DNA of 64,000 bases from Rhodosorus marinus CCMP1338 (GCA_029953675.1 JAMWBK010000007.1:2148800-2212799); one strand, 5' to 3'. Counted from the first letter of the stretch, positions 19,226 through 64,000 are shown. A program made the numbers and translations. The notes: a model not told the origin generated them from the sequence alone.

Positions 19226-20778
19226 ATGGAGATTGGGAAAGGGGGAGGTTCCTCCGTGAATATCAATGCATCCTGGCTGTTTTTGAGCTTGATGTATTTG
19301 GTTCAAGGGATTCCGCTTGGCCTGGCCGCAGGGAGTGTTTCATATTTGTTGAAGAGCTCTATGACATACTCCGAGGTCGCAATTTTCTCTTTTGCAACTT
19401 GGCCATATGCGTTGAAGCTTTTTTGGAGTCCAGTGGTTGATGGGTTCTACTGGTCCAAACTGGGAAGGAGGCGCAGTTGGATTCTGCCGGTGCAGATACT
19501 TATAGGTCTCACAATGATTTATATTTCGCAATGGATAGATTGCTACTTGCCTGGCGAAGAGTGCTCGACACAAGGTCCTCGTCCTGAGGCACCTGGTATC
19601 CGGTTCATTACCTTTTGGTTCTTCATTTTGGTGCTTCTTAGCGCAACTCAGGATATCGCTTTGGACGGGTGGGCACTAGAGTTGTTGCCCGAGAGTGACA
19701 GGCACCTCGCATCAAGTGCACAAACGATGGGGCTTACTGGTGGTTTCTTTCTGTCCTTTACGGTACTGCTCTCACTATCTTCTAGAGCTTTTGTACGCGA
19801 ATGGCTCCCTTTTCTAGAGGGTCCGCCCATAACTATCTCCGGTTACATTCGATACGCCGGCATTGCTGCAGCAACTATGAGCGTTTTCGTGCTTCTCGTG
19901 CCTGAGTATCCGCCAACGGAAGAACTGGATGTCATGGACGTGTACAGGAAGCTTGTCTCGGTCGTTATCTCTCGGCGGGATTTGCTGCTTGTTCTTCTTG
20001 TACATAAGTTGGGATTTGTTGCGAACGATGCTGCATCAAGCTTGCTATTGCTGGAGAGAGGCTTTAGAAGAGAGGACTTCGCGCTGACAGCAATGTTGGA
20101 CTTCCCCGTACAGCTTGTTGTCGGGCTTATAGTGACACGCTGGTCAAAGAAGCGGAACCCAGTCCAACCGTGGGTTACTGGACAACTTATGCGACTTGCT
20201 CTGTGCTTTATCATGAACGTATTTATTTATTATGCAGTTGGAAGAACCTCCGGGCTGGAAGCTTTCTTTCCGTTGGTGGTCTCCTTGTCCATTCTTACAA
20301 GCGTAGCTGGCACAGTCATGTTCATATCTCAAGGGGCATTTTTCGCTGTAATATCTGATTCAGCGATAGGCGGCAGTTATCAAACGCTGCTCAACACGGT
20401 AAGCGAGAGCAGAAATGACCCACCGGATATGGCCTGGTTTGAATGGAATCAGCGCCTTGGTTATAGCTCTACTTGTTTGACCCTTGTTTTGCTGATGCGA
20501 ATATCATTGCTTCGTTTCTTTTCGTTCATGGCTGGCAGTTTTCGAACTTTGGTGGGACCTGGCCGAAGTTCTTTGTCCTCCGGGCCATTGATTACTTTAA
20601 CGTTGAGGTTTGCGACAGTATGAGCAACTGCGTGCGTACTCGGGAGGGTTATGTTCCCGTCTCGTTTGCGACTGTGTCCCTTGGTGCTTTATTGTTCGCT
20701 TTTTTGGTGAGGCCAAGAATTCAGGATCTCGTGCAGAGCAACAGGAATAGCGCCGTCGCGAAAGACAAGATGTCATAG
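19226..20778 (+). CDS. SLC33A1: Acetyl-CoA transporter (SLC33A1/AT-1 family, MFS)
   Basis: LMYLVQGIPLGL, WPYALKLFWSPVVD, GRRRSWILPVQ, LSATQDIALDGWAL, GGSYQTLLNT | FSNFGGTWPK; intron 20399-20538. Confidence 0.9.
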
Positions 20779-29902: not shown

Positions 29903-30020
29903 GATTTAACCGATTGCCAGGTGAGCGAATCAGCCCTCCACACCACACTTCCACAACGGGAATGCCCATCAGCAAACCTAAAACCGCACTTTGGTATAGA
30001 GCATATGGTGCATACTTGCA
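29903..30020 (+). repeat. ~118-bp direct repeat, left flank of the Copia complex
   Basis: Near-identical to 34642-34758. Confidence 0.9.
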
Positions 30021-30044
30021 TCCTTGCGAAAACTGACCAGTGCG

Positions 30045-32528
30045 TTAGTTCGCACAACCTGCTCCATATGGCCTCGGAGGATCTACCTGCCGCCCTCTGG
30101 GCTGAACTCGCAAATGCGGCGGTTTACCTTCGCAACCGTGCAGCCACAAGAGTTTTGTGCTATGATATTCCCTATCATAGGCTTTACAGAAAGCTCCCTA
30201 ACTACCGTCACCTAAGATCTTTGGAGCCCAGAGGGAGACAGCACGTGCGAGCAGAAGAACGAACCAAGATTGATCGCACATCAAGACAAGTGTTGGTAGG
30301 TGATGAGGGTAGTAACTATCGCCTGTGGGATGCGGCAAGAGGGATCGTACGAGTCTCTAGCAGCTTTGTGGAAACGGAAACAAGGAGTCTAATACAAGTA
30401 TGAGTGGTACAAGTCCAGCAGGATCCAGAAGAGACAGAAGAGGATGCAGCGGAACCGACATCAGAACACGAGGAACACACCTCCGAAGTGGCTAAGAGCC
30501 CTAAGCTAACGAGAAGCAAGAGGACAAGTAAGAAACTTAATTGGTTTTCAGTCAATCAATCGGAAGCCTTAAGCGCAGCGGCGGCTGACCCAAGCACATA
30601 CCTTGCAGCCGTCAATGGAGTTGACGGGAAGGAGTGGAGAGCTGCGGTGAACAAGGAGCTGGAAGTTCTTGAACGATCAGGCACTTGGCAGTTCTCAGAG
30701 TTACCGGAGGGAAGAAGACCCCTGGCTACAAAGTGGGTCTTCGCAACGAAGAGAGATGCTTCGGGGACACCCACTAAGCGAAAGGCGCGTTTGGTGGCGA
30801 AGGGATTCCTTCAGAGGCGAGGAGTGGACTTCATGGTATATGCACCAGTAGTCCGATCCAGCAGCCTTCGGCTATTACTCTCCTTCGTGGTGCAGAGGAA
30901 GATGCTGCTAAGACAGTTCGATATTGAATCTGCATATCTACATGGGAAATTGGAAGAGAATTTGTACCTTCAAATTCCGGAAGGAGTAACTCCACCAGAT
31001 GAAATGACAAGAGCAGGACTGAATTGATCAAAGCCATCTACGGCCTGAAGAGGGAGGGAGGGTATGGAACCAGACCCTGGACAACAAGTTGCGGAGTATT
31101 GGATTTCAGCCCACGAGACTGGGACCTGCGTGTACCTGAAGAAGGAGTGAACCATGTACATCTCATTGTACGTAGACGATCTCTCCTAGTAGCAGCACCG
31201 GTTATCAAGGACATTGATTGCGTCGTGGGGCTCATCAAGGCGCAATTTCTCGTGAAGGAACTTGGTGAGGCCAGAGACTTACTGGGTGTAAGACGATCGT
31301 ACAACCGGGAACATGGTGTGCTGAAGTTAATCCAGCCAGGATTAGCTCAGTAAATCTAAAACGAAGCAGGTGTAGCGATTTGTTAGTACACCCCTCGACG
31401 CAGGAAACATGGTATGTGCGGATGACGGAAAAGAAATTCGACAAGCGGGTCAGTATCGAACATATTTGCCAGGTACAGGGCCTGTGGGAAAGGCCCTGTA
31501 CCTGGCAAATATGACCCGACTCGATCTAAGCTTCGCGGTGCGGTATCTGGCACAAACCGTAGCATCTCCCACGGAACGAGGATGGAAGAACCTTGTGCAC
31601 CTGTGCAGATACATTGGTACAACGGCAAATGCAGAACTCACGTACAGTACTACTTCGGTGCCTGAAGTCGTTGCTTACAGTGATGCAAGCTTCGGAAACG
31701 AACGAGGAAGAACACAGTGACAGGCTACGCAACTCTACATGGTGGAAATCTGATCAACTGGGGGTCTAAGAAGCAGCGCGTTGTTGCTCAGTCAACTTGC
31801 GAAGCGGAACTAATCGCGGCGAACGAAGGAGGTGGAGATGCTAAAAGGGCGTATAACCTCCTGTATGAGTTGGGCGGAGAGACTCAAACACCCCTCATAA
31901 GAGTGGACAACAGTGGGGCCTTGGCGTCGATAACGACCAAAGGAGTGACTCCGAGAACAAGGCACCTGGAAATCAAGCAGCTATGGCTACAATATCAAAC
32001 CCAACAGGGGAACTTGAGGATAGAGTATTGCCCGACGGAACACACATGATTGCTGACCACCTGACGAAGACTATTACCGGCAAACGTATGAGAGAACTCA
32101 CAAACATGAGCGCGTTAAAGTTGGATACTTGTCTGAGGGGGAGGATGTTGGACCAGAAGCATTCGAGCATCCAATTATACACACAAGTGGGAAGAGAGCG
32201 CATTGGATCTGAGGAATGAAGGCTCACCTAGAGCGTGGAGACCTGAAATAGGATCATCAGAGGTAACCGGTGTTCTTGATAGGCCTATACTGCGTAGTGT
32301 AGTATGAAATCGTATCCGATATCGTGGATGCTATTTTTGGTTTTGTTCTTAATGCCACATCGAAGGGTAACCTAGATTTAGATTTAGGCTCAGGGTATCG
32401 AAGCCTAGCTTCGGTACTTAAACGGAAGTTGCACATTGTAGTAGAAAGGTAGCTTGAAGTAAAGGCGACGAAGGTCCAGGGTTATCCAGGAAGACATCGG
32501 TCTGAGCTTTGCGGTGAGCAAGACAACA
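30045..32528 (+). mobile_element. Ty1/Copia LTR retrotransposon, 3' half (integrase C-terminus, RT, RNase H, PPT, 3' LTR), frameshifted
   Basis: LPAALWAELANAAVYLRNR; KWVFATKR..RKARLVAKGFLQ..VYAPVVR; FDIESAYLHG; IKAIYGLK; out-of-frame LYVDD; YSDASFG; WGSKKQRVVAQSTCEAELIAA; RTRHLEIK; PPT GAGGGGGAGGA at 32135-32145. Confidence 0.92.
32146..32528 (+). repeat. LTR (TG...CA, 383 bp)
   Basis: Starts TGTTGG right after the PPT and ends GACAACA; homologous to the inverted copy at 34207-34641. Confidence 0.92.
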
Positions 32529-42619: not shown

Positions 42620-42756
42620 TGCGGAAAAGTACGCTCGAAAACACCGCCTTCACCTCAACTTAATCTTGATATCGCTTCTCACAACACGGATCCACCCCAC
42701 TTCGCCGTACTTGACGCTCAAGATCTGGTCTCTCACAAATCAGCAAAACAGCGATC

Positions 42757-43023
42757 CAATGTTTCAAGCAATCTCCGTCACCGAATTGAACTTTTCGCGT
42801 TTGCCGGGTTAGCGATTGACCTGGTTTAACGGAAAATCATTGCCGTCCAATATTTCGAGCCTCCGTCACCGAATTGAGCTTTTGGCGTTTGGCGTTTGAG
42901 CGATTGGTCTTGTTTAACGGAAAATCATTACCGTACAATGTTTCAAGCCTCAGTCACCGAATTGAATTTGTGGCGTTTGGCGCCTGAGCGATTGGCCTTG
43001 TTTATCGGAAAAGCATTGTCGTC
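42757..43023. repeat. Degenerate 88-bp tandem repeat, 3 copies
   Basis: GTCACCGAATTG...GCGTTTG...AGCGATTG...TTTAACGGAAAATCATT recurs; GAATTG at 42783, 42871 and 42959. Confidence 0.9.
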
Positions 43024-48120: not shown

Positions 48121-48257
48121 AGTGGGTGGTTTTACGTCCGGGGTTACGTGCGGGAGCCGGGGTTGAGCCTGATCATTTCCATAGACAGTGATAGGATTAG
48201 TGTTGCGCTGCAGTAGGCAGCTGCCCAGTAAAGGATACAGTTACGTTAGTCTGGGGT
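48121..48257 (+). other. Proximal border of the subtelomere: variant telomere repeats, CAGTAAAG motif and one perfect telomere unit (possible mini-element)
   Basis: GGGGTTACGT at 48141, CCGGGGTT at 48158, CAGTAAAG at 48226-48233, GTTACGTTAGTCTGGGGT at 48240-48257. Confidence 0.65.
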
Positions 48258-51070
48258 GTCGGGACCAGCAGCACACGGCCAACGTACGCTCAGCGCACTG
48301 TCGAAAATACTCCAGCTCGAGCATCAGAGGCTCAACTGCGACCAGCAGGACGCCCAGGCCCACAGACCCAGCAGGCAGCACTGCGACAGCTGCACGCCAC
48401 AGTGGGAAGGTCCTCCTGGGGACCTGAGACCAAACCGGTACTGGCGACCCTGAGGAATGTAAGACCGCCACGGCTGGACGAGGTAGCCCCATCGGACTTC
48501 ACCACGGTTCTTCGCAGAGCCTTGGGGATTCCGAGCTCTTATGTGGCGCACGTGGACTTCATCGCTTCCCACGCGTGCTTACTATGCCCTCCGGACGCGA
48601 TTCCGATTCCACAAAGCGCCATCTCTCGGGGCGTTTTCAGGACGGGGATTTTCGGATCGTTCACCCAGAGACACCCCGATCGGCAAGTGACTCTCTACAC
48701 GGGACAGGCACTGGATACAGACAACCTGTTGGGCTATAATGAACGTCAGCACATTGCCCCAGCGAACATCGGGGCCCAGACCCTGAAAAGAGCCATTGAC
48801 CAGACTATCCGGATCCGCGCGAGGCTTCGCAGAAGGCAACTCTCGTTCAACACTCTCGCAGCGATACACGAGTACCTGGAGAGCAGACTCGGAGACCTAC
48901 AAGCCAGACAACGTACTCCAACGGTACAAGGGGAGAGCGCGGAACCCCCAGCGCCTGCAGCCACCACGAACGCAGACCCTGAAGCCTCGTCCGTTACAGG
49001 GGACGCACAGGCAGCCCGTGGGACAGTCGACGCTCCGGATATTCCCCTAGCGACTTCCCAAGTACCTGAAGAGGATGCACCCGAGGATAACCCTCATGCA
49101 GGCTCCCCTGCAACCTGCCCGAGCCTCCTCAACACAAGCGGTCGCGAGTATCCACTGATGGCACAGGCCAGGATACCGAGATGACTCCGGCAGGCGTCGA
49201 GGCTCCACAGGGCAACACTGCACCCCAGGCCGACCACACTGCCACCCATCACGCGATGGACACACAGGACAGCCAGGAAACACCTACGCAATAATGCCCA
49301 GCCGACAAAGGGGAATCACAAGAAGACGCGACGAGCCTCTGTTCTTCTCGGATCGTCAAGCCTGGGTTAAACGGTGGACCGACTTCGCTGACCAAGTTAC
49401 AACAGGAGGCAGGCATTGGACGCGCCTAACACACTGCCCGGTACCCACACGGCGCTTTGTGCCCCGTGCCCACGTCAATACCTGGAGCCGCCTTCTTCAT
49501 GCAGCTCTTGAGATTTCCATGGACACAGCCGCACCCGCCAACGCTAGCCTACTTCTTGTCGGACTTCCAGGCCTGGTGCTAGGACGTTGTGCACTTGACA
49601 TCGGTATTCAGGTCACACATGTGCTCGAAGGAGAATTCCATACGGTGTGGACCGCGCTTGAAGACAGGGCGTCCCTACTGCAGCAGAATACTGCCACACC
49701 GGGAACCGAAGCGACTCGCCGCCAAGCTTTAGGACGCCAGAAACAAGCCCTGAAACTGGCACACCTCGGTGCCTCTCGGACGCTGCTCGTCGACTGCAGG
49801 CAACGGAAATGGCTCCCCTCACCCAGACTACCTGGCGCCAACTCCAAGGACTCTTCCCAGAACCTGCGGCAGGTAACTTACCAGACGAGGTGGCCGAGGC
49901 CCTGGAATCACTGCGCAACACTGACGATACGACTCTTCAGAGCCGATGGGATTCCACAAAAGCCGCTGATGAGGGTCTCCTGTCGATTGTGGCACGTCTT
50001 CCGCAGGGCAAGAGCCCAGGCCCCAGTGGAATGAGCGCGGAACATCTCCAAGGCGCCAATCAACAGACGCAAGTGGCTTTGATCCGCGTACTGCGACAAC
50101 TAGCGACAGCTCCGGAGAATTTTCCTTCTCCGCTGACGCGTGCCCTGCGTAGCAGCAGACTACTACCATTCGCGAAGCCACCGAAGGAATCGGCTCCACA
50201 GGAAAACCCAGGCGTTCGGCCCATCGGCGTCCCTGAAGTTCTGCGAAAAGTGGCGACTCAATGGACCCTTCGCGCGGTGATCGACAGGGTGCGCACGCTC
50301 CTGGTGCCATAACAACTAGGAATCGGAGTCAGTGGCGGATGCGAACGCTCACTTCACGCGATCCAGGCCCATCTGTCATGTGAACCAGACGCGGTGGTGC
50401 TTAGGCTTGACCTCGAGAATGCATTCAACAGGATTGATCAACGCCTCGCCAAGAAACTCGTGGACCAGCACTTTCCGGAGCTTGCGGTGGTCTACAGACT
50501 TGGGTACGGAAGCGACGCAGCGGACTCGCCGACGCTTTGCGGCTGGCGCTCTGCACCTGGAGAGAACCAAACGGAACACTCACGACTGACGCTCCAAGCA
50601 GCTACGGGAGTACAACAGGGAGACCCTCTTGGGCCGGTGCTACATGCACTAGCACTCGCACCGTTCCTAAAAGCTCTGCGAACAAAGTTCTCTGATCTAA
50701 CGATTGTCGCTATCCATGACCATATTACGATCGTGGGACCCCTGCAGGAACTGAAGCAAGCACTAGCCTGGAGCCGAACCATGCTCCCATCTCTTGGGGC
50801 CCGCCTACAACTCAACAAATGCACGCTATACGGCCGAGCCTTGACGACGGCGCGAGTCATCAATCGCGAGATACCTGACATACAAGTTACCCGAGAAGGC
50901 GTCACTATCCATTCGATCCCGATAGGAAACCGGGAATATATCGAGCACGAGTGCCGTGCGCTTCAAAATAAGCACGAAAAGGTCATCAAGGAAATCGCCC
51001 AGCTACCGCAACATGAACTTAACGCACAGGTCGCATTGTTCAGGTACTGAGCTGAAACGCGGCTAGATTA
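48258..51070 (+). mobile_element. CRE-like non-LTR retrotransposon, lineage A/C, copy A (frameshifted, 3'-truncated)
   Basis: PGPSGMSAEHL, LRSSRLLPFAK, VRPIGVPEVLRKV, LRLDLENAFNRI, GVQQGDPLGP, AIHDHITIVGP. Begins directly after a telomere unit and is cut at RY*AETRLD by element B. Confidence 0.88.
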
Positions 51071-51217
51071 TGTTTCTTTTTCGGTCGCGAGCGTGTTCGT
51101 TTACGGGAAGCGCTTCCTCTGGTACGCCTTCCCCTCGATTTTCCGCGGGGCGTCGTTTGTATTTGCAACCACTTCCGTCTTCCGGGTGGGTGTGTTGCGG
51201 GGCCTTTCCTATTTGGG

Positions 51218-52702
51218 TTGGGTTTGGTCGATTATTCTCTCGGTGCGGTTTCATATTGGTGGTGCAACGTTTCCTTTGCGCATTCCCTCAGGATGGTAGC
51301 GATATCTCCGCGCTCGACGGAGCCTCATCCCAAGGAGGCACTGCCAGGTGGGGGACTCCGTGTTCGCCTCAGCTGCGGCACGTTTTCTTCCGAGGTTGAC
51401 TTGGAAGGCGCTTCTGGCACCCAGGCGCGTGCACTTATCTCCGCTGTCTCCAGCCTGATCACGGCTGCGAGTGATCGTGGAGTGCTCCCTCAGCTCACCA
51501 AGAAGCTAGGTGGGCTGGAATCGGGATTGCTGGCCAGGTCAAATTCAAATTCGGACGAGAATTTGAATTGCCCCAGAGTGGCAGGATTGGCTGAAGGCAG
51601 TCAACATCAGGTCAATCAACATGAACCTGTCCCGGGACAGGCGAGGGCGGTTGCTTCTGCGCGGGACAGTACGACGTTGGGGAGCGTCAGGCCGGGCCAA
51701 AACGCGCTTCAGCGCTCGGGGACTCGAGGCAATGGTGGTGGTGACTGTGCGGCAACCGGTGTGGAGGAGACTGCAGCTGTGGACTTCCCTCTCTTGGACC
51801 AGCCCTCAGGTGGTCACCAGCTCCCGGCTACTTCGGGGGCACGTGGTGGCCGCAAGGGGGGTGCTTCGTACGCATCAGTCTTGCGGAAGGGCACCACTGC
51901 CACACGTACGGCGGCTATGCTCCGTTTCATACCATCTCGCGAGCCTCAGGATGGACCTGTGGAGACCACTCTCCAATTTCTGTGGGTGCGAAATGTCCGG
52001 CCCCAGACTACACGAGGACAGGTTCCGTCTATGCGAGACTTCCGGGACACTTTTGCGGAATCGTTAGGGTGCAGCCGGGGTGATTTCTTCTTCGCAAACT
52101 ATGAGGGCCGCGATGTGCTGTTTTTGGTCTCCGCAACCGCCGCCAAGTACCTGGAGGCCTTGCTGGCGAAGCCTACCGAGCAGTGGCCTGAGAGCGCCCG
52201 GTGGCTGCGCTGCAACCCGCAGGTGGTTTTGCACTTGGATTTTGACCGTTTCTCGGGCAATTTCCTGTCTCCGGGAGAAACGGCAGGGCTCTCTGAGCAT
52301 GAGAGCAGCGTGAAGGCGGCAGCGATCCATTGGCTACGGATTCAGCGCCTTGAGAGGATCTTGTTGGAGCGGTTCCGGTCGGGCCCTCGTCACCTGCGCA
52401 TGGCGGTTTCCAGTTTCTTCGATCTGGAGAGGCGACTTGTGCTGACTTCGCGCTACAAGACAGAGCTGCAGCGGGTGGGGATTTTGGAGGGCTCTGCTTC
52501 CAGCACTACTTCCAGCGAGAGTGGTGAGGAAGGGGAGCAGACTGAGGGCATGGCGGTGGAGGACGCCCAGGTTACTTTGCTGAAGCCCGCGGGATCCGTT
52601 CCGCGAGCCTCGCGGAGTGGGCGGCTCACGACTTTGGTGCGGATAGGAGGTAAGAGAGCGAGGACCGACTCCCCCGGGTCTAAGGGGGAGAAGCACGATT
52701 AG
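51218..52702 (+). CDS. Element B ORF1 (494 aa), function unknown
   Basis: Uninterrupted ORF; a partial homologous copy lies at 59244-60390; contains a SYASVLRK motif and a basic C-terminus; true start uncertain. Confidence 0.65.
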   Translation: MGLVDYSLGAVSYWWCNVSFAHSLRMVAISPRSTEPHPKEALPGGGLRVRLSCGTFSSEVDLEGASGTQARALISAVSSLITAASDRGVLPQLTKKLGGLESGLLARSNSNSDENLNCPRVAGLAEGSQHQVNQHEPVPGQARAVASARDSTTLGSVRPGQNALQRSGTRGNGGGDCAATGVEETAAVDFPLLDQPSGGHQLPATSGARGGRKGGASYASVLRKGTTATRTAAMLRFIPSREPQDGPVETTLQFLWVRNVRPQTTRGQVPSMRDFRDTFAESLGCSRGDFFFANYEGRDVLFLVSATAAKYLEALLAKPTEQWPESARWLRCNPQVVLHLDFDRFSGNFLSPGETAGLSEHESSVKAAAIHWLRIQRLERILLERFRSGPRHLRMAVSSFFDLERRLVLTSRYKTELQRVGILEGSASSTTSSESGEEGEQTEGMAVEDAQVTLLKPAGSVPRASRSGRLTTLVRIGGKRARTDSPGSKGEKHD

Positions 52703-52733
52703 CGCTCCAGGCACGGCTGCGAGGTCGCAGCCT

Positions 52734-55700
52734 ATGGATCTACAGTCTTATGTCCTGAAGGAGGGCGGAGACTGGGGCATTTGGCGTACGCGTTTTCGGA
52801 GTTGGCTCCGGCGGTGGATTTCTTTGGAAGGAGGCTCGCTTCCCCTCCGTGGGGGCATTCCCCCAGTCGTCCTTCCTCGTGGAGACCTTCTAGTAGCTGG
52901 AACCATTCTCGATTTCATCTTCACGAGCCTGGCTCGCAACATTCGGGACACAGTCATTTGGGTTTTTCTGGGGGTCATGCCGCGCCTGATTCTGGCCCCC
53001 ATTCACACATCGGAGCGCAGATGGCGAGTACGAGACCGACTGGCCCTGTTCTTGAAGGGAGATTTCGAAGTATTACAGCGCAGCTATTTGGTGTCGTCAG
53101 CACCATCCGCCCGTCGGACTCGGCATGGCACAGTGTCGCCCGTGCCAGCTCGAGTACAGAAATTGGTAGCAGTGAGCGATTTAAGTCGAGCGGCGCGGGT
53201 TTTGGAGGGCCAGGCGCCTGTCCTCCCCTACGATGATAGTCTCGCCCAGACGGTGTCGTCTTTGTTCCCTGAGTCCGACGTGGATTTGTCCCCTGAATTC
53301 GAGGTATTCTTGGACCGTCCGGAGTTGGCCAAGTTTCGCATCGATCTGACGCTCAGTGAGTCTGACCTGGAGGATTTGCTTCGTACCTCGCGTCGGGGAC
53401 GCTGTCCCGGACCCTCCGGACTAATAACAGAGCTATTGCAGGCCCTGAGCCAGCCTGGCAAGAGCGCGCTTCTGAGGATCCTTAACAAGTTGTTCCAGGG
53501 CGTATCGGGTGCGTCTGCGCCATGGGAACATCTACGGCAGGCACAGCTTTGCTTGCTCACGAAACCTGACCACCAGCCGGCCCACCCGCGTCTCCGGCCG
53601 ATCGGGATGGTGGAGAGCCTACGGAAGTTAGCCGGGAGGTGGCTATGCCAGCGCCTTCGCCAGCGCGCCACAGCTTTTATGGCGCCCTTGCAAGTAGGGG
53701 TGGGATTTTCTGGGGGTTGCGAACTGATCACCCATGGGATCGAGCTAGAACGCGCCAGTAGGCCGGAGTGGGGAGTCTTGGTGGTTGATTTCCGGAAAGC
53801 ATTCAACAGCGTGTCGCGGACGCATGCGCTAGAGGTGCTCCAACGTGTGTTTCCGGAGGCGTGGCCGTTTCTATCGGGTATTTACGGAGGGGAGAGCCTC
53901 CCCTACTTGACAACGGAGGGCACTGTTTTTCAAGCACATACTGGCGTCCAACAAGGCGACCCTTGCGGACCTCTTCTTCATGCCTGTGCCCTACAGCTCG
54001 TACTTTTACGTCTTTCGACTGAGGTCTCGGATCTTCGAATCTGCGCGTACCACGATGACGTAACATTGCTGGGCACCCCTGACACGCTGGCTAGGGGACT
54101 GACCGCGATCGAAGCGATTGCACGTCGCGCCGGTTTGACTGTGGAAACAGAAAAATGTCGCTTTCTCCCCGCGAGGGACGTGTCGCTGAACTCTCTGCCA
54201 CCCACTCTGCGACTAATCAGCGAACGTGAAGGGTTCGAACACCACGGCGTCGGATTGGGGACTGACAACTTTGTCCAAGCATCCTGCGAGCGAGTTTTGG
54301 CGCGGCACAAGCAACTCACCGACGCCATTGAGCACCTACCCGATAACATGCTGCAATCGGCCTGCTTGGTTTCCCGCTTTTGTGCCGGTCCCAGACTCAA
54401 CTACTGGTTGCGCAGCCTGCCTCCAGCTTGGGGCTCGTGGATCGCGGCTAAAGCCGACGAAATGACCCTGCAACACTGGGGAACGCTCTTGGATGAGCCT
54501 CTCGATCTTGAAGCTGCTCCCGACAGGGACTTAATTCGTGCGCAGATCGCTCTACCGTTGCGATTAGGGGGATTCGGCGTCGCAGACCGTGGGCTGGTAT
54601 GCTCGCCAGCGGCGGTTGCCTCCTGGGCTACCGCGCTGCGAACGTTGGTGACCTTCCAGATGCGAAGTGCCTGCCTCTTGGCTCGAGCTTTGACCAACGA
54701 GGATCCAGTGACCCTGCCGCCCCCGCTTTTGACAATTTATGATGGTCTTCAACACGCGTTCAGGAGGTGAACGCCGTGGCGGACGCAAATCGGTCCCGCT
54801 TTCGTTCCTGGAGGGAGCTGCTATGGGGACGAGCTGAAGCGATTAAGGATTGTCCCCTCGACCGAGTTCTTGCCGATGACGGAGAGGCTAGCCCCGGGTC
54901 CCCTGTTGCAGACTACCTGGGTTTGAGCCGATTGTGGAGCTCCCGCGCTGATGTGATTCAACATAGCCTCACCTGGGGCCAACACAGTGCCGCTCACACA
55001 GTCATGCTCAATTCTCCTCTCACGCCGCCTACCACTGCCGCTCGTCTCCGCGGCATGGGAGGCCACCTCTCGCACTTGTGGTTAACCACTCTACCGTCGT
55101 CATTGAGTCATCGTCTCGATGCTTTCCAGTTCCGTTCTGCCGCACGCATCTATCTCGGTTTGCCACAGGCTCCGTGGCAGTCTAATCGGCCGTCTTTCTG
55201 TCAGGGATGTGAGAGCCGGATTGACGCTTGTGGCTACCACTTCCTGGGTTCCTGCGGACTGTTGCGAGGTCTCCGTACGAGGCGTCACACTCGCCTCAAG
55301 TGCATCCTCAGCGCATTTTTGACTCGGATCGGGCATACGGTTGAGGTTGAGTCGGAACTGCCCAGATCAATCTCGGACTCTGCACCGCCCCGTTGTATAG
55401 CCGATCTCCTCGTCTCCGACGCTGCTGCCAGACGCTCAACATATGTGGACCTTGCGATTACCTGCCCCGTGGCCAGCGCCCACCTCACCGCAGCCGCCCG
55501 CCGCCGGGGGGCCGCGGCTTCAGCCCTTCGAAGAGTTAAGGAACGACGGTATATGCTGAGAGCATGGCCAGTCTGCCTTGCGCTGAGGGTCGCTCTCACC
55601 GGTTCCAGCCATTCATTGTGGAAAGCTTTGGTCACGTGGATAAGTCGGGTTTAGAGTGGGATCGGAAATGTTTTGCTGAGCATCCTACTGAATATTTGGC

Positions 55701-55806
55701 GCTCTTGAGGCGTTTAAGTGTCTCCCTTTGGCGATATTCCTGCAACATGCTTTCCGAGGCGCGCCATCGGCGCCTGGGGTTGCATGGTTCCCTCCCTAGT
55801 TATTAG
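52734..55806 (+). pseudogene. Element B ORF2: RT plus CCHC plus restriction-like endonuclease, two frameshifts (~54765, ~55550)
   Basis: PGPSG, LRPIGMVESLRKL, VDFRKAFNSV, GVQQGDPCGP, AYHDDVTLLG; CQGC..H...C, RRHTRLK, IADLLV...YVDLAI, KERRY, PFIVESFG. Confidence 0.9.
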
Positions 55807-55852
55807 TTCATCTTCACGCCTTGCGTAGCGCTTCAGGCTATGCTAGTAAAGT

Positions 55853-56512
55853 TCCGAACGAGGCGTCACACTCGCCTCAAGTACATCCTCAGCGAATTTT
55901 TGACTCGGATAGGGCGTACGGTTGAGGTTGAGTCGGAACTTCTCAGATCAATCTCGGACTCTGCACCGCCCCGTTGTATAGCCGATCTCCTCGTCTCCGA
56001 CGCTGCTGCCAGACGCTCAACATATGTGGACCTTGCGATTACCTGCCCCGTGGCCAGCGCCCACCTCACCGCAGCCGCCCGCCGCCGGGGGTCCGCGGCT
56101 TCAGCCCTTCGAAGAGTTAAGGAACGACGGTATGCTGAGAGCATGGCCAGTCTGCCTTGCGCTGAGGGTCGCTCTCACCGGTTCCAGCCATTCATTGTGG
56201 AAAGCTTTGGTCACGTGGACAAGTGGGGTTTAGAGTGGTTGCGGAAATGTTTTGCTGAGCATCCTACTGAATATTTGGCGCTCTTGAGGCGTTTAAGTGT
56301 CTCCCTTTGGCGATATTCCAGCGACATGCTTTCCGAGGCGCGCCATCGGCGCCTGGGGTTGCATGGTTCCCTCCCTAGTTATTAGTTCATCTTCACGCCT
56401 TGCGTAGCGCTTCAGGCTATGCTAGTAAAGTCCAGTAAAGTCCAGTAAAGCCAGCCAGCCAATAAAGCCAATAAAGCCAAGCCAATAAGAACCAGTAAAA
56501 ACCAGATAAAAA
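55853..56512 (+). mobile_element. 5'-truncated B copy (B2, REL region) with a degenerate tandem-repeat tail
   Basis: Near-identical to about 55272-55852; tail of CCAGTAAAG/CCAATAAAG-like units at 56423-56512. Confidence 0.9.
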
Positions 56513-56946
56513 TTCGAGTCAAAGCCTGGGCTGGGGACACGCATCGCGTTACTAGGATTGGCCTTAAGTAAACCCCCAAATGCTCATAAAGGCGATTAGT
56601 TTCGAAAAACTATGTGGCAGTTCTTTGCGATGGGCGCATTGCCAGCCAGGAGTGAGGAACCAGTCAGAGTAAGCTGGGATAGCGGTAGCCAGTCTCTGAA
56701 AGCATATGTATAGTGTGCGAGTGATGCCATTCAACGAACACTAAACGGACGCAAGAGGAGTAGAAACCAAGTAGCTTACTACGCAGGAGATCCGTACTCT
56801 TCGCGAGGCAGATACCTGGCCATGCTCCACGAGCTCTGCCGGATGGTCTTTTGGAACTGGAAGGCCATTGCAAAAGCTGTCCTCAAAAACAAACGGGATG
56901 AGGTTTCTTCGACGTCCGTGAGTGTCTTGCAGAATAGATTCAACTT

Positions 56947-58560
56947 TTAGTGAACAACGTGACCAATGACAGATATGAACAAAAACTTGGGTCTATGTAC
57001 GATTTCAGTGCGTCTGTTCCTTCCGATGGAGCGGGAGATTGCACCATCCCTTTTCTGCTCATCGTTTAGCTCGGCGAATTCTTGCTCAAAGTCCGCGTCG
57101 CTCTCGTTCGGATCAGTCTCACCGTGGTACTCGCCCTGGACGAAATCTGAGTCTTCAGCGACTTTGGCCTCTTGGACCCTGGAGGTCGCCATCTTGAAAT
57201 TGAGTCCGAGCTCACGCTCTCCTCTGTATGACGTTCCCCATCGCATGGCTAGGGCCGACCTTTTCGTGATCCATCCGCCGTGCCACAGCTTATGCTTGAG
57301 GTAGAGGATGGTCCTACCTGACTCTTGCTCCTTAATAGTTTTGTAGAAGTTGGCGGCGCCGCTGCCGGGCTTCGAGAATCCCCAGTTGAAGTTCTTGCTC
57401 TTCGAACCATCGGAGTAGCGGATGTATCCATAACCACTGACCGGTTCATCGACCTTGACCCTGCTGATAAAGCCGAACTGGAAAGGACACATCTTTTTCA
57501 CGACGGGATTGACTGCTCTAAGTACTGAATCTGAGTCGTGAAGATGCGTACCGGCTTGCGGTATCTAACAGTAAAGCATAGCTCGGTCTTCTTTCGGTTG
57601 AAGCTCTTGATGGAGGTGTTGTTCTCAACCCAGTTGGACACCGCGCTGGTATCGCCAAGCCTCGACTTGACAAAATCAATGACTTAGCTCGGTCTTCTTT
57701 TCGTTGATGCTCTTGATGGAAGTGTTGTTCTCAACCCAGTTGGACCGCGCTGGTATCGCCGAGCCTCGACTTGATAAAGTCAATGACTTTGTCAGTGATC
57801 AGTTCGTTGAGGTCGAAGGTGAGCTGCTCCTGGATGTCGGGCCTGCCCAGCTCACCAATAACCGCCTCCTCAACTTCCTTCACCAGGCAACCCTTCAAGT
57901 CGTAGAAGTAGTTGATCACATTGTTCAGCTTGTCGAGCACCCAGGAGTCCGGCTTGATGTCAAAGTCCACCTTGACGTACTTCGGAACCATTTTTGACAA
58001 TCCCTTCCTTCTTCTTGCTGGATTGGAGCTTGAAGTAGATCCTGATGTTGAAGTTGTCCAGCGAGATGTCGTGCTTGAGGAAGTGCGCCTTGCACGGAGC
58101 ATCTGTGCGCGTGTTGCTGCATCCAATTTTTACTTCGGGACCCGCGCTCTCCATGTGAAGCCTCAACACGTTGAGCTGACCCATCTTGGGGTGTTTGTAA
58201 GGGTAGAAATCGATGTCCTGAGTGCAAACGTCCCGGATTTAGACCTCGTACAAACGGTTGAAACCAGGCTTGTTGGGGACCTTCTTGGCCTTCTTCGGAA
58301 GTACCTTCAGCTGGATCCGTTTGCCAAAGGGGAAGACAAGGAAACTTCCGTCCGGATTATACCAGCGATTAGCGATTCCCTTCCACGTTCCCAAGCTGTC
58401 GAGGCACTTGTGGATCGAGTTGAGGTTCTTCGACAAAATTGGATAACAACAGAAGGAAATATTCTGTTTGATATGGTTGCATACATCTCGGAGGATACAA
58501 GATTGTGCAACCTCAACGTTCTCCTCTACCTTGGAATTGTCACGGACGATTAAGTTCCGC
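56947..58560 (-). pseudogene. Orphan gene fragment with frameshifts, stops and a 106-bp tandem duplication
   Basis: Collinear protein-like frames (58560-58239, 58235-57960, 57990-57731, 57501-56947); duplication 57579-57684 / 57685-57788; no family recognised. Confidence 0.55.
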
Positions 58561-58586
58561 CTCAACTGACGGCTTAGTGTAAAAAC

Positions 58587-59258
58587 TCTAATCGGCCGTC
58601 TTTCTGTCAGGGATGTGAGAGCCGGATTGACGCTTGTGGCTACCACTTCCTGGGTTCCTGCGGACTGTTGCGAGGTCTCCGTACGAGGCGTCACACTCGC
58701 CTCAAGTGCATCCTCAGCGCATTTTTGACTCGGATCGGGCATACGGTTGAGGTTGAGTCGGAACTGCCCAGATCAATCTCGGACTCTGCACCGCCCCGTT
58801 GTATAGCCGATCTCCTCGTCTCCGACGCTGCTGCCAGACGCTCAACATATGTGGACCTTGCGATTACCTGCCCCGTGGCCAGCGCCCACCTCACCGCAGC
58901 CGCCCGCCGCCGGGGGGCCGCGGCTTCAGCCCTTCGAAGAGTTAAGGAACGACGGTATGCTGAGAGCATGGCCAGTCTGCCTTGCGCTGAGGGTCGCTCT
59001 CACCGGTTCCAGCCATTCATTGTGGAAAGCTTTGGTCACGTGGATAAGTCGGGTTTAGAGTGGGATCGGAAATGTTTTGCTGAGCATCCTACTGAATATT
59101 TGGCGCTCTTGAGGCGTTTAAGTGTCTCCCTTTGGCGATATTCCAGCGACATGCTTTCCGAGGCGCGCCATCGGCGCCTGGGGTTGCATACTTCCCCCCC
59201 TAGTTATTAGTTCATCTTCACGCCTTGCGTAGCGCTTCAGGCTATGCTAGTAAAGTCC
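58587..59258 (+). mobile_element. 5'-truncated B copy (B3)
   Basis: Near-identical to about 55181-55852; flanked by AGTGTAAAA at 58576-58584 and 59259-59267. Confidence 0.9.
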
Positions 59259-59267
59259 AGTGTAAAA

Positions 59268-60390
59268 GAAGGTACAGTGAGGAGTTGCTGTCGAGGATTG
59301 GAGTTTTGTTTCTTTTTCGGTCGCGAGCGTGTTCGTTTACGGGAAGCGCTTCCTCTGGTACGCCTTCCCCTCGATTTTCCGCGGGGCGTCGTTTGCTTTT
59401 GCAACCACTTCCGTCTTCCGGGTGGGTTTGTTGCGGGGCCTTTCCTATTTGGGTTGGGTTTGGTCGATTATTCTCTCGGTGCGGTTTCATATTGGTGGTG
59501 CAACGTTTCCTTTGCGCATTACCTCAGGATGGTAGGGATATCTCCGCGCTCGACGGAGCCTCATCCCAAGGAGGCACTGCCAGGTGGGGGACTCCGTGTT
59601 CGCCTCAGCTGCGGCACGTTTTCTTCCGAGGTTGACTTGGAAGGCGCTTCTGGCACCCAGGCGCGTGCACTTATCTCCGCTGTCACCAGCCTGATCACGG
59701 CTGCGAGTGATCGTGGAGTGCTCCCTCAGCTCACCCAGAAGCTAGGTGGGCTGGAATCGGGATTGCTGGCCAGGTCAAATTCAAATTCGGACGAGAATTT
59801 GAATTGCCCCAGAGTGGCAGCGTGGGCTGAAGGCAGTCAACATCATGTCAATCAACATGAACCTGTCCCGGGACAGGCGAGGGCGGTTGCTTCTGCGCGG
59901 GACAGTACGACGTTGGGGAGCGGCAGGCCGGGCTAAAACGCGCTTCAGCGCTCGGGGACTCGAGGCAATGGTGGTGGTGACTGTGCGGCAACCAGTGTGG
60001 AGGAGACTGCAGCTGTGGACTTCCCTCTCTTGGACCAGCCCTCAGGTGGTCACCAGCTCCCGGCTACTGCGGGGGCACGTGGTGGCCGCAAGGGGGGGGT
60101 TTCGTACGCATCAGTCTTGCGGAAGGGCACCACTGCCACACGTACGGCGGCTATGCTCTGTTTCCTACCATCTCGCGAGCCTCAGGATGGACCTGTGGAG
60201 ACCACTCTCCAATTTCTGTGGGTGCGAAATGTCCGGCCCCAGACTACACGAGGACAGGTCCCGTCTATGCGAGACTTCCGGGACACTTTTGCGGAATCGT
60301 TAGGGTGCAGCCGGGGTGATTTCTCCTCCGCAAACAATGAGGGCCGCGATGTGCTGTTTTTGGTCTCCGCAACCGCCGCCAAGTACCTGG
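59268..60390 (+). mobile_element. B copy 5' portion (B4), 3'-truncated by telomere repeats
   Basis: Homologous to 51071-52154 with extra upstream sequence; ORF1 has CAA>TAA at 59934; ends at AAGTACCTGG. Confidence 0.9.
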
Positions 60391-60452
60391 GGTTACGTTA
60401 GTCTGGGGTTACGTTAGTCTGGGGTTAGTTTGTCTGGGGTTATCTGGGGTTA
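60387..60452 (+). repeat. Interstitial telomere tract: 2 perfect 16-bp units followed by shortened variants
   Basis: CTGGGGTTACGTTAGTCTGGGGTTACGTTAGTCTGGGGTTA-GTTTGTCTGGGGTTA-TCTGGGGTTA. Confidence 0.95.
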
Positions 60453-60929
60453 TTGGATAAGGTTCGAAATTAAGTTTGTAGGTTTGGTTCGCCTGGGGTA
60501 AAATATGCCAAACACTGGCACTTCCCCTTCGTTTGGGGAGGGGAATTCGAAGAATACCGGTGCAATGAGCGGAATGCTGCCTGCCTCTCCAATTGCTGAA
60601 CGAGAGGACGGGCATGGGTCACATGATGGACTACAAGCGACTACTTTACGCCCAGAAGAACCGTGCCAGGAGGGGAGTCGGACAGAGCCTTCTACGTCAT
60701 CCTCTCCCGCTAACACGTTCCTCCACCAACTTCGAAGCTACGATCAGTGCTATCACGCCCTCGGAATTGGGGAGCAGGACATCGCGAACTTCTACAAAGC
60801 AGTCTTCAATCTCTACTCGCGAATTAACAGTACCACAGAGATACATAATGTCACCAGCCGCCTCACGGAACTTGCACAGAAGCCCCACATGTGGCAAGCT
60901 TCTGCACAGACTTCGAATCCCTCGGGAGC
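60453..60929 (+). mobile_element. Probable 5' end of a retroelement (segment D; 142-aa ORF 60505-60933) ended by telomere repeats
   Basis: The ORF's stop codon is supplied by the following telomere tract; bounded by telomere repeats on both sides; family assignment unproven. Confidence 0.4.
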
Positions 60930-60957
60930 TTAGTCTGGGGTTACGTTAGTCTGGGGT
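60930..60957 (+). repeat. Interstitial telomere tract (28 bp)
   Basis: TTAGTCTGGGGTTACGTTAGTCTGGGGT. Confidence 0.95.
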
Positions 60958-60958
60958 A

Positions 60959-63484
60959 ACCCCAGACTCTGACGAGAGCCTCCTGTCAACGCTGGAACAC
61001 CTACCGTACGCCACAGCCCCCGGGCCGAGTGGACTCAAAGCCGAACATCTGCGAAGTCTCACCATGACAACGCAACCGGTACTTGTACGCTTCCTTCGCA
61101 AGCTTGCCACCACTCCGGAGAGCTTCCCTGACGTGTTTCTCGAAGCCATGCGCAGCAACCGACTCCTCGCGAAAGACAAGCGAACGTCTGCCGAAGCTAG
61201 ACAAGGGTACCCTCTTCGCCTACGCCCGCTAGGGATTCCTGAGGTACTGCGGAAGGCCGTCACCCAATGGACACTTCGCGCTGTCGCCACGCCCCTTCGC
61301 GACTTTCTGCTCCCGGAACAACTCGGCATCTCGGTCAGCGGCGGCTGCGAACACGCTATCCACCTCGCGGAAGCCCACCTCGCAGCGCGCCCAAATGACG
61401 TGCTCCTCAAACTTGATCTCGCAAACGCGTTCAACAGAATCGACCGACGCCTCGCAAACCGTATCATCGAGCTAGCTTTCCCCGAATTGAAGTCGCTTAT
61501 GACAATGAGCTACGGACCACGAGGCGAGAGCGCCCCACGCCAATTCGGATGGCGAGACAGCGATGTCGATGACTGGCTCCAGCTCCGAGCCTGGACTGGA
61601 GTCCAACAAGGCGATCCGCTGGGACCTGCTTTACACGCGCTCGCCCTTTCCCCACTCCTACGAGCACTACGAGACCGGTTTCCGAGGATCACCCTTAGCG
61701 CAATCCACGACGACCTCACCTTACTTGGCCCTCTGAAGGACGTGAAAGAAGCGCTACACTGGAGCGAGCACCACCTCCCCGAAATAGGCGCACAACTTCA
61801 AAGGACGAAATGCGAGCTTTTTGGACTCCAACTGCCGACGACCAGACTCGTCAACAGGGAAATTCCCGACGTACATGTCACCCGGGACGGAATCCAACTT
61901 TATTCCATCCCTATTGGCACACGGACCTACGTCCAAGACGCGAACAGGAAGCTACAACGAGAACATGAAAAACTCGTCCAAGAGGTCATCCGTCTACCGA
62001 CCACTGAGCTACCAATTAAACTGTGCCTATTCCGCTACTGCGCAGGACCGCGTCTAGACTTTGCTCTACGCACGCTCGCCCTACAATACGGAGCCAATCT
62101 CGCACGCGAAGCCGATCGCATCTCGCTCCTGGAACTCGACAAACTGTGCGGCTCGCTCCTCGAAGGCCAGGGCCTCACAGGACCCGCAAAAGACGTGGTC
62201 GAAGCGCAGATCCAGCTCCCTTGCCGATGGGGTGGCGCAGGCCTAGCGATGAGAACACGAATACAACCCCTCGCCTTCTTCAGCAGTTGGCGACAGACTC
62301 TGAAGCTCAATTGGACTGGATCTAGCCACCTAGGAGCGCTACTCGATGCCTGCACATCGACGAACCTGACCGAGCACCATCACATTCGACCCCTGCTCCA
62401 CTCGACGGATCAACTTGGAGCACAACTAATCGAAGCGAGCCTCCACTCAAAACGCTGCCTGGCACGAGGAACACCGGCCCCCATACTTCGCCTAACAGAA
62501 TGGCAATCGTTGGAGAGCCAAGAACAAGCAGAGAACCCGCACACACCACCCGACAGGCCCTTGATCGGTTCAACCCAAAAACTCCTCTCCAACTGGAGTC
62601 ACCGACGGGCATTCGAGGAAATGGTGGAGAACGCGGAGATCAGCGAGACGGCACGTGCGCGAATACGCTCCTGCAAGGGATCAGGAGGGGTACTTGGCTG
62701 CGAGACTTGCCAAGGAAACACGGACGCGGCCTAAGTAGCGGAGAACTGAACCTGAGCCTTCGACAACTGTTGGGATTACCCCTGCCGGGTGTACGAATAC
62801 TTAGTACGTGTACGATATGTTCCCAACCACACGACGCTGCAGGCATTCAACGCCTTCACCACTGCACCAGCTCTACCGGCAGTTGGACAATTCGGCATAA
62901 CATGGTCAGGGACGCCCTGGCGACAGTGCTGAGACAATGGCGACTAGAAGTGACAATAGAACCGACCGGACACTACCAAGGCAGTCGGCTTCGGCCTGAC
63001 ATTCTAGCCCGACACCCACGAACAGGCAAGCTCTACGTGATCGATGTGAAGGTGACCTCGCCTTTGCAAAGAACACACCTCCACAAAGCGTCTTGGGAGA
63101 CCGGGTATGCGGCACGGAAAGCGGAAAAGTTTAAAGAGTCCAAATACCGTGACAGTATCGGAGAACATAACGACGACATCTTCGTCCCCTTCTGCCTGGA
63201 AACATTTGGGCAGATGGGACAACAAGCGAGTGAGTTCCTCAAGGAAGCGACTATACACCTGGATCAGCGGGCAACGCAAGTAAGTGAGGCTCGGGCGATC
63301 TTGAACCGCACTTTGTGGAAAGGAAACGCTATCCTTGCCACCCAGGCACGTCGTGTCGACGAAGCAGACTATGACATCGTCCCTATCTTAGAACGTAGCC
63401 ACACAACCCATTAGGGGTTTCTTTGCTGACCAATAGGATCCTTATTGCTTCTTAATGGGCTCCAATAGGGAGTTCTTCAGTAAA
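60959..63484 (+). mobile_element. CRE-like non-LTR retrotransposon, lineage A/C, copy C (5'-truncated; RT-CCHC-REL with one frameshift; 3' UTR joined to the telomere)
   Basis: APGPSGLKAEHL, LRPLGIPEVLRK, LKLDLANAFNRI, GVQQGDPLGP, AIHDDLTLLGP; CTIC...HHC, IRHNMVRD, RPDIL...YVIDVKV, AEKFKESKY, PFCLETFG; stop at 63414. Confidence 0.93.
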
Positions 63485-63532
63485 GTGTACGCGGTTACGT
63501 TAGTCTGGGGTTACGCAGACTAACGTGTACGC

Positions 63533-64000
63533 GGTTACGTTAGTCTGGGGTTACGTTAGTCTGGGGTTACGTTAGTCTGGGGTTACGATAGTCTGGGGTT
63601 ACGTTAGTCTGGGGTTACGTTAGTCTGGGGTTACGATAGTCTGGGGTTACGTTAGTCTGGGGTTACGTTAGTCTGGGGTTACGTTAGTCTGGGGTTACGT
63701 TAGTCTGGGGTTACGTTAGTCTGGGGTTACGTTAGTCTGGGGTTACGTTAGTCTGGGGTTACGTTAGTCTGGGGTTACGTTAGTCTGGGGTTACGTTAGT
63801 CTGGGGTTACGTTAGTCTGGGGTTACGTTAGTCTGGGGTTACGTTAGTCTGGGGTTACGTTAGTCTGGGGTTACGTTAGTCTGGGGTTACGTTAGTCTGG
63901 GGTTACGTTAGTCTGGGGTTACGTTAGTCTGGGGTTACGTTAGTCTGGGGTTACGTTAGTCTGGGGTTACGTTAGTCTGGGGTTACGTTAGTCTGGGTTA
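63533..64000 (+). repeat. Terminal tandem array (GGGGTTACGTTAGTCT)n, about 29 units, likely telomere
   Basis: Homogeneous 16-bp unit with the G-rich strand running 5'->3' toward the window end; two T>A variant units at 63588 and 63636. Confidence 0.9.

Follow-up and report, generated by a model that had tools for sequence, protein, structure and literature searches.

Restriction-like-Endonuclease Retrotransposons Beside a 16-nt Telomere Repeat at a Chromosome End of the Red Alga Rhodosorus marinus

The window analyzed here is a 64-kb stretch of DNA (bases 2,148,800–2,212,799 of JAMWBK010000007.1, assembly GCA_029953675.1) that forms the final 64 kb of a 2.2-Mb contig of Rhodosorus marinus, a red alga of the Stylonematophyceae whose genome assembly is Nanopore-based (PMC10250338). 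Its last part, 48.1–64.0 kb, is the right end of an R. marinus chromosome, the telomere of which is the 16-nt repeat GGGGTTACGTTAGTCT, and it holds a block of retrotransposons without long terminal repeats (non-LTR) and their fragments, designated A, B1–B4, C, and E, together with a small unit, D. On balance, we think it probable that the clade comprising A, C, and E inserts into the telomere repeat by priming from a nick in the C-rich strand, and that breakage and re-capping then build the subtelomere.

The telomere repeat and its junctions with the elements

The authors of the assembly reported 13 large contigs, 12 of the 13 with telomere at one end at least, and the sequence of that telomere is not stated in the searchable text of their report (PMC10250338). 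In the window, the terminal array occupies 63533–64000 (+ strand; motif scan and Tandem Repeats Finder, TRF) with 29 units of GGGGTTACGTTAGTCT, and TRF gives 29.1 copies of the 16-bp unit with 99% matches at 63533–63997. The array runs to the last contig base, 2,212,799, and its G-rich strand is oriented 5′→3′ outward, into the contig end; two variant units (GGGGTTACGATAGTCT) lie close to its proximal edge. With up to one mismatch allowed, GGGGTTACGTTAGTCT matches 33 times in the window where 0 matches are expected (100 shuffles), and all of these matches are confined to 60389–60420, 60937, or 63491 onward. The reading of the initial annotation, that the 16-bp array marks a chromosome end and is not internal, was borne out by its reaching the contig end with the correct G-strand polarity. 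At the one chromosome end looked at, the terminal position, polarity, and regularity are as expected of a telomerase-made array; the first two fit a putative telomerase-made telomere, and the addition from a microhomology seed at B4, described below, would be compatible with telomerase as well. If the array is telomerase-made, the template in the telomerase RNA would be predicted to span 17 nt or more, some permutation of AGACTAACGTAACCCC together with an overlap. To our knowledge, 16 nt is far above the 5–12 nt of the telomere repeats known outside budding yeasts. The repeat motif, in several rotations, is absent from the searchable literature, our literature search found no paper on Rhodosorus telomeres, and 32-nt and 18-nt telomere words gave 0 matches in JGI metagenome and transcriptome contigs.

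The block was mapped by self-BLAST, three-frame translation, junction reading, and an exact-word telomere scan. From ∼48 kb onward the G+C content rises from 0.43–0.51 to 0.52–0.60, and blastn and tblastx find nothing similar to the block elements in window positions 1–47000. Classified elements make up ∼80% of the block, unclassified sequence 13%, telomere ∼4%, and D 3%. The initial annotation had described the last 16 kb as a same-strand stack of non-LTR elements; every classified piece does lie on the + strand with its 3′ end outward, and the part of the description that did not hold is a 2.1-kb segment (56511–58586) that is unclassified and carries minus-strand open reading frames (ORFs).

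Inside the block, the exact-word scan locates telomere tracts at 48240–48257, 60387–60427 and 60432–60452, 60930–60957, and 63493–63515, and none in the 47 kb upstream of it; telomere sequence is present at each of the junctions of A, D, and C named in the initial annotation. For the description of junctions, the unit is numbered G1 G2 G3 G4 T5 T6 A7 C8 G9 T10 T11 A12 G13 T14 C15 T16, and a slash marks the breakpoint. E (48166–48239, + strand) is a 74-bp 3′-terminal fragment, added here to the pieces of the initial annotation and recognized by alignment to the 3′ untranslated region (UTR) of C; it resembles C and L002, a 4.2-kb transcript-like JGI contig bearing a full-length sister family. 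E terminates ...CCCAGTAAAGGATACA directly before telomere, and its 3′ junction reads ...CAGTAAAGGATACA/GTTACGTTAGTCT, i.e., G4TTACGTTAGTCT. The telomere that follows (GTTACGTTAGTCTGGGGT; 48240–48257, + strand, an exact match to the cyclic repeat) extends for 18 nt from the 3′ end of E to the 5′ end of A (48258–51072, + strand), which places E and A head-to-tail and 1.1 telomere unit apart. C (60958–63492, + strand) is preceded by a tract of 28 nt, or 1.75 units (60930–60957, + strand), is 5′-truncated, and is complete at its 3′ end, where the junction reads ...CAGTAAAGTGTACGC/GGTTACGTTAGTCT, i.e., G3GTTACGTTAGTCT. Distal to it, a 40-bp piece (63493–63532, + strand; junction reading and word scan) begins with 23 nt of telomere, continues with a telomere word of 11 nt in inverted orientation, and ends in an 8-nt mini-copy of the C 3′ terminus (GTGTACGC), the 3′ junction of which is identical to that of C; a 40-bp duplication, or another insertion truncated to an extreme degree, could have given rise to this piece. 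The 5′ junctions of A and C both fall after ...TCTGGGGT/ (...TCTGGGGT5).

Telomere repeat therefore flanks C at both ends, E at its 3′ end, A at its 5′ end, and the 8-nt mini-copy, but not B. All of the retrotransposition-type junctions of the A/C/E clade (4–5 of 4–5) fall inside a 3-nt window of the 16-nt unit, a clustering to which simulation assigns P = 0.016 with 4 junctions and P = 0.003 with 5. Telomere association, as proposed in the initial annotation, is seen at the junctions of A, C, and E; no telomere is found at those of B, and the 3′ flank of L002 is non-telomeric. At the insertion of C, the upstream and downstream flanks overlap by 3 bp (GGT), which is consistent with staggered nicks and is seen in one copy only.

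The phase of these junctions bears on an alternative in which the block is a passive graveyard, where elements without target preference persist under weak subtelomeric selection, interstitial telomere stems from breakage and healing, and the telomeric flanks are coincidental. Breakage with healing is clear at B4 and D, and this is also where the breakage and re-capping claimed in the initial annotation can be recognized. B4 (59262–60390, + strand; self-BLAST), the 5′ part of a B element 3′-truncated within ORF1, ends ...AAGTACCTGG followed by GGTTACG, with a 4-nt CTGG overlap between element and repeat (CTGG/GGTTACG). It runs into an interstitial tract (60387–60452, + strand; TRF 3.6 copies) of two perfect units and then shortened variant units, which decays distally. 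D (60453–60929, + strand), a small ORF-bearing unit, is likewise 3′-truncated and telomere-capped, with the junction ...GGGAGC/T10TAGTCT. From the junction sequences, each truncation looks like a break that telomerase healed by extending a short seed. A graveyard would further account for B copies that lie in the block with no telomere at their own junctions, for LINE/CRE sequences (long interspersed nuclear elements, LINEs) that amount to 9% of the genome and are mostly non-telomeric, and for the 3′ flank of L002. It would, however, require healing to strike E, C, and the mini-copy precisely at their 3′ termini, each at the same phase, and that phase would be needed again at the 5′ ends of A and C (P 0.003–0.016), whereas the demonstrable healing junctions at B4 and D lie at other phases than those of A, C, and E, and inside elements. 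We regard the graveyard as an unlikely explanation.

A mechanism for the A/C/E clade can start from four things that are observed: which domains the elements encode, what the junctions read, how the elements are oriented, and that they lie at a contig end. Since the sense strand of the elements runs on into the G-rich strand and their 3′ ends are distal, the priming 3′-OH would belong to the C-rich strand, which offers no natural 3′ end at the chromosome terminus; a nick by an endonuclease would therefore be required. The need for a nick agrees with the conserved endonuclease described in the next section and excludes G-overhang priming of the Drosophila type. In such end attachment, the 3′ overhang of the G strand primes without any endonuclease and the elements help to maintain the telomere, which would suit the head-to-tail, same-strand arrangement at a chromosome end. 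G-strand priming, though, puts the element 3′ ends proximal and here they are distal, the regular 29-unit terminal array points to active telomerase, and an endonuclease is encoded and conserved, so that end attachment is scarcely credible.

For insertion primed from the C-rich strand, the endonuclease would nick that strand opposite the GGGG/T part of the unit, and the freed 3′-OH would prime cDNA synthesis from the 3′ end of the element RNA, as in target-primed reverse transcription. Priming of this kind would fix the 3′ end of the element outward and would give precise 3′ junctions (the element end, then (G)GTTACG...) and 5′ junctions ending ...GGGGT, with copies often 5′-truncated. Terminal breaks within elements would be healed by telomerase from short G-rich microhomology, as at B4 and D, and each healed end, being a fresh telomere tract, would offer the target of the next insertion. 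In the block, the more decayed pieces (E and A) are proximal and the near-intact C is distal. A bolder version extends the specificity beyond this one chromosome end: at least three LINE families would insert only into the 16-nt telomerase repeat, for which we found no description, at one position and by a C-strand nick, the cycles would build every subtelomere, and D would be a non-autonomous passenger. In that full form, the proposal seems doubtful to us.

Two inverted telomere words accompany these junctions, one of 13 nt (GTAACCCCAGACT; 60956–60968, exact-word scan) located precisely where the upstream telomere meets the 5′ end of C, and the other of 11 nt (CAGACTAACGT; 63516–63526) precisely where telomere meets the 8-nt mini-copy. 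The 13-nt word and the adjacent telomere make a palindrome with 10-bp arms. A template switch during second-strand synthesis could be the source of such words.

Reverse transcriptase, endonuclease, and element families

Pfam finds the reverse transcriptase (RT) domain RVT_1 above its gathering score in A (ORF 50394–51050, E 2.7e-8), B (ORF 52734–54770, E 3.4e-16), and C (ORF 61064–62734, E 2.7e-13), and comparison of the RT with the PDB gives a weak match to R2 and L1 ORF2 (R2 E 0.0018). The region after the RT of C was aligned with the B copies and 17 database homologues (20–21 sequences). Columns C40, C43, C58, H69, D118, and K148 are invariant and R68, E90, and D103 nearly so, which together make up the signature of restriction-like endonucleases (REL), a zinc knuckle followed by RH, E, (R)PD, D, and K. 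The published REL motif is C-x1-3-C-x7-8-H-x3-4-C-x9-10-RH(D/N)...E...(R/K)PD-x12-14-(D/E) (PMC12857005). In B, the domain reads C-x2-C-x9-H-x4-C-x9-RHT-x17-E-x17-IAD-x14-D; in C, RHN, E, RPD, and D-V-K are present. The knuckle of C is a lineage-specific variant that L002 shares, in which Q takes the place of the standard His and a conserved H adjoins the final Cys. For the REL domain of C, AlphaFold gave a model with a mean predicted local confidence (pLDDT) of 84.2 and a predicted overall-fold score (pTM) of 0.83, and the seven top PDB matches of this model are all R2 retrotransposon proteins (E 1.6e-7 to 1e-4, probability 1.00). B and C carry an RT of the non-LTR type and a restriction-like endonuclease. 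The RT–REL architecture of the initial annotation is hence confirmed for these two, while A, being truncated, has no REL domain and its catalytic box is mutated.

The clade label is a separate matter. The initial annotation took these motifs as the architecture of the CRE clade; the CCHC/RH/PD..D motifs in fact mark the whole restriction-like-endonuclease group (R2, NeSL, R4, CRE, and others) and not CRE alone. Pfam detects no N-terminal zinc-finger or Myb domain in the elements, and given this together with the marginal RT similarity to R2, they are not elements of the R2 clade. The published RepeatMasker table for R. marinus lists 4036 pieces of LINE/CRE in 24 families, amounting to 2.82 Mb or 9.04% of the 31-Mb genome, with two families at ∼1% divergence. 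It is solely from this automatic table, whose families are not mapped to A, B, and C, that a tentative CRE-like label derives.

RT identities are 51% between A and C, 51% between A and L002, and 49% between C and L002, and B is 32–34% identical to A, C, and L002. On these figures, A and C, which the initial annotation had treated as one lineage, are separate families of one clade, and B belongs to a different lineage. The nearest relatives outside Rhodosorus, from environmental and eukaryotic data, are 27–37% identical, with C or B as query, homologue searching brought up no additional protein from the R. marinus genome, and no member of the A/C/E clade was found in the 47 kb upstream of the block. 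The E fragment aligns locally to the C 3′ UTR with a score of 33, which is reached by 3 of 2000 shuffles and 2 of 2000 genomic controls, and CTGCCCA(G/A)TAAAG is common to E and the L002 3′ end; judging from these alignments, E is a true element 3′ end.

A (Pfam, translation) retains an ORF1-like region and part of the RT, inside which it ends. It has at least one frameshift (near 49800) and an in-frame stop, and its catalytic box is HDH where P0002, a less damaged close relative among MMETSP transcripts, has HDD; A is dead. The NCBI model NDN08_004844 (P0003; window 49294–51050), annotated as a hypothetical protein, is A with introns drawn around the frameshift and the stop codon. It is a retrotransposon pseudogene, and annotators should read it as a decayed element that has been spliced around its lesions. 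C has one −1 frameshift at a GGGG run near 62690 that, in a Nanopore assembly, could be a sequencing error. The frame changes of C (62640–62760) and L002 (3290–3420) both fall in a Gly-rich linker just before a W-L-R-D-L-P motif. A conserved programmed frameshift between RT and REL was considered and rejected, since the shift is −1 at the GGGG run in C but +1 and ∼10 codons farther upstream in L002, and P0002 keeps its frame at this place; these linker frameshifts look like decay or homopolymer sequencing error.

The pieces of the B family are 97–99% identical among themselves in self-BLAST. B1 (51068–55852, + strand; Pfam, self-BLAST) is essentially full-length at 4.8 kb, with an ORF1 of 494 aa, an RT ORF of 678 aa, a REL ORF, and two apparent frameshifts, and ends CTAGTAAAGT. 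B2 (55853–56510, + strand; self-BLAST, with TRF for the tail) is a 5′-truncated 3′ end, 97% identical to B1 55272–55852, that directly abuts the tail of B1 and itself finishes in a decaying (AGTAAAGTCC)n tail. B3 (58587–59261, + strand; self-BLAST), also 5′-truncated, is 99% identical to B1 55181–55852 and keeps the REL C-terminus intact. B4 lies within 42 bp of the tail of B3 and is 97.8% identical to B1 51068–52154; the homology begins at 59304, and 59262–59303 may be extra 5′ sequence of B4. There is no telomere at the retrotransposition junctions of B itself, and degenerate telomere was looked for after the B2 tail and around B3 and B4, with none found. The adjacency of B2 and B4 to B tails suggests insertion beside the element's own tail, and B, the more distant family, appears to insert next to its own (AGTAAAGTCC)n tail and not into the telomere repeat.

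At the junction of A and B1 there is neither telomere between the two nor a downstream remainder of A. This arrangement invites a further alternative, a recombination patchwork in which break-induced replication or ectopic exchange copied ready-made segments from other chromosome ends and few of the junctions are local. The unclassified 2.1 kb between B2 and B3 would also be in keeping with it, and such events are documented in MoTeR arrays (PMC7367193). A patchwork leaves the first origin of the phase-specific junctions unexplained, moving it only to another place, and no second copy of the segments is at hand for comparison; we consider it improbable.

D has one relative, P0075, a complete 173-aa ORF from the R. 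marinus transcriptome that matches the D ORF with E 3.3e-22. D shows no RT, no ORF1 homology, and no homology to A, B, C, or L002, so that its treatment as a retroelement in the initial annotation is not supported; the idea that D derives from the 5′ region of an element of type A, B, C, or L002 was rejected on the same grounds. In L003 (1–1752; JGI 3300017118, R. marinus transcriptome), an 80-bp 3′-truncated B piece, 90% identical to window 55555–55634, precedes a complete D-like ORF, and a 209-aa ORF on the opposite strand lies downstream. From this arrangement, D is taken to be a 3′-truncated, telomere-capped copy of a recurrent B-associated unit. The D-like unit may be a mobile or recurrently captured subtelomeric unit. 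The order in L003 mirrors that of B4, telomere, and D in the window. A shared telomere-like leader upstream of the D and L003 ORFs was rejected, the alignment being reached by 100 of 1000 shuffles.

L003 also has a bearing on whether chimeric or misjoined Nanopore reads could have produced the telomere–element–telomere pattern. The assembly is Nanopore-based and several apparent frameshifts are present, one of them at a GGGG run, as an assembly artefact would predict. Against this, the interstitial tracts are unequal in length and decay, the junctions are precise and include a healing junction with microhomology, and L003, an independent transcriptome contig, likewise has a 3′-truncated B piece beside a D-like ORF. 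An artefact is thus very improbable.

Several observations weigh against telomere-directed insertion by the A/C/E clade as the source of the block. The phase clustering comes from 4–5 junctions at one chromosome end, and C and the 8-nt mini-copy may be linked rather than independent. The telomere-associated clade has no intact member in the window, A being dead and C 5′-truncated with a frameshift, and L002 reads past its AATAAAG...ACAGT 3′ motif into non-telomeric sequence. With 2.82 Mb of LINE/CRE (9.04%), most restriction-like-endonuclease LINEs of the genome are not telomeric, and the families of the block could include interstitial copies elsewhere. The frameshifts and short interstitial tracts could include Nanopore assembly errors. 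Finally, the A–B1 junction is outside a simple cycle of insertion, breakage, and healing, and needs insertion of B into A, a template switch, or recombination.

Two observations on L002 and the element ends can be added. Positions 1–113 of L002 are 89% identical to B 54922–55034 in reverse orientation, which would reflect chimerism in the assembly or the presence of an inverted B fragment next to an element copy. E, B, C, and L002 each carry an (A/T)GTAAAG or AATAAAG motif 7–15 nt short of their 3′ terminus, and the D-like unit of L003 may have one too (48226–48233, 55846–55852, 56425–56454, 59247–59256, and 63479–63486 in the window; ∼4108–4114 in L002; ∼927–934 in L003). This shared TAAAG-type motif could serve as a signal for polyadenylation or mark the 3′ end for recognition by the RT.

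Relation to known telomere-associated elements

Retrotransposons that intercalate into telomeres include SART/TRAS, GilM/GilT, Zepp1, MoTeR1, Tx1-1_ACar, and Athena, and the hosts of telomere-repeat-specific elements are insects, fungi, Giardia, a green alga, a lizard, and rotifers (PMC10088271); Cnl1 and FoTeR are further telomere-associated elements (PMC12857005). We found no report of telomere-inserting retrotransposons from red algae in the literature. Telomere-targeting elements as such are already known, and the points of note here are the red-algal host, the 16-nt target, the choice of strand, and a telomere repeat for which no description was found. Occurrence in a red alga would point to a further, independent origin of telomere retrotransposons or to an old lineage of them, and would put to the test whether a restriction-like endonuclease can be adapted to a target unit as long as 16 nt.

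Closest in enzyme type and array structure are MoTeR1 and MoTeR2 of Pyricularia/Magnaporthe oryzae and FoTeR of Fusarium oxysporum. As in these, the RT here is followed by a C-terminal CCHC...RH(D/N)...E...(R/K)(P/A)D...(D/E) endonuclease (PMC12857005), and as in MoTeR, insertion would be into telomere-repeat tracts, and 5′ truncation is frequent. MoTeR arrays are head-to-tail with spacings of half a unit to many units (PMC7367193), the pattern seen with E and A, and MoTeR truncation is followed by de novo telomere addition from 1–4-nt seeds (PMC7367193), as at B4 with CTGG. The MoTeR 5′ ends, however, are always nearest the chromosome end (PMC7367193), whereas here the 3′ ends are distal, so the opposite strand would be nicked. 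MoTeR 5′ ends also carry variant telomere-like repeats, and the 5′ end of A, which begins GTCGGGACC..., is without any. In both of these traits, the 5′ end not being nearest the chromosome end and the lack of variant repeats at the A 5′ end, the R. marinus elements fall outside the MoTeR family. MoTeR and FoTeR target TTAGGG, in contrast to the 16-nt repeat, red-algal host, and separate ORF1 found here. The opposite orientations make the two systems a pair that can be compared for how strand choice is set.

SART1 of Bombyx mori, one of the telomere-intercalated elements named above, resembles the R. marinus elements in orientation: its sense strand runs on into the G-rich strand, and its 3′ end points outward. 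SART1 has a fixed insertion position in the telomere repeat and coexists with an active telomerase-type repeat. It differs in belonging to the R1 clade, with an N-terminal APE-type endonuclease and a poly(A) tail, whereas in the R. marinus elements the restriction-like endonuclease is C-terminal and poly(A) is absent. R2 (Bombyx, zebra finch, turtle) has the same C-terminal zinc knuckle and PD-(D/E)XK fold, and its target-primed reverse transcription is the model adopted here for the A/C/E clade; unlike the R. marinus elements, it targets 28S rDNA and has N-terminal zinc-finger and Myb domains in a single ORF. The RT and restriction-like-endonuclease architecture is found as well in CRE/SLACS/CZAR, Cnl1, and GilM/GilT, of which Cnl1 and GilM/GilT are telomere-associated (PMC12857005; PMC10088271), and the targets of CRE, SLACS, and CZAR are spliced-leader genes. 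A CRE-clade family may also be scattered through a genome in thousands of copies, as in Ectocarpus (PMC12477816).

Other features of the block and the window

At the proximal edge of the block, a degenerate telomere-like remnant (GGGGTTACGT... GGGGTTGAG; 48136–48165, + strand) contains a 10-nt exact telomere word at 48140–48149. It is marginal, the 60-nt window over it scoring 26 against a null maximum of 25, and may mark the oldest position of the chromosome end. The unclassified segment at 56511–58586 has a G+C content below that of the neighboring elements, no homology to any element, and edges without telomere remnant; that 56.4–58.6 kb might be the missing 3′ part of A was rejected for want of homology. 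Its minus-strand ORFs, of 131–184 aa, have no Pfam match, and it contains a 129-bp direct duplication with 88% identity (57579–57707 and 57685–57810).

A search of the whole window against Rfam matched no family. A long, intron-free ORF at 19175–20623 encodes an acetyl-CoA transporter (Acatn) domain (E 1.3e-87) and shows that ordinary host genes reach within ∼16–20 kb of the element block. The ORF at 27956–29716 combines amino-acid kinase and GNAT domains, and just downstream of it is a Ty1/copia-type RVT_2 gene at ∼30005–31027 (L001 4050–5072). Two tandem repeats were noted, an 88-bp non-coding repeat at 42755–43023 (3 copies, 83% matches) and, within the ORF at 4037–5275, a 15-bp repeat (GGAAGAAGATGAAGG) at 4681–5016 in 22 copies, which would encode a Glu/Asp/Gly-rich stretch.

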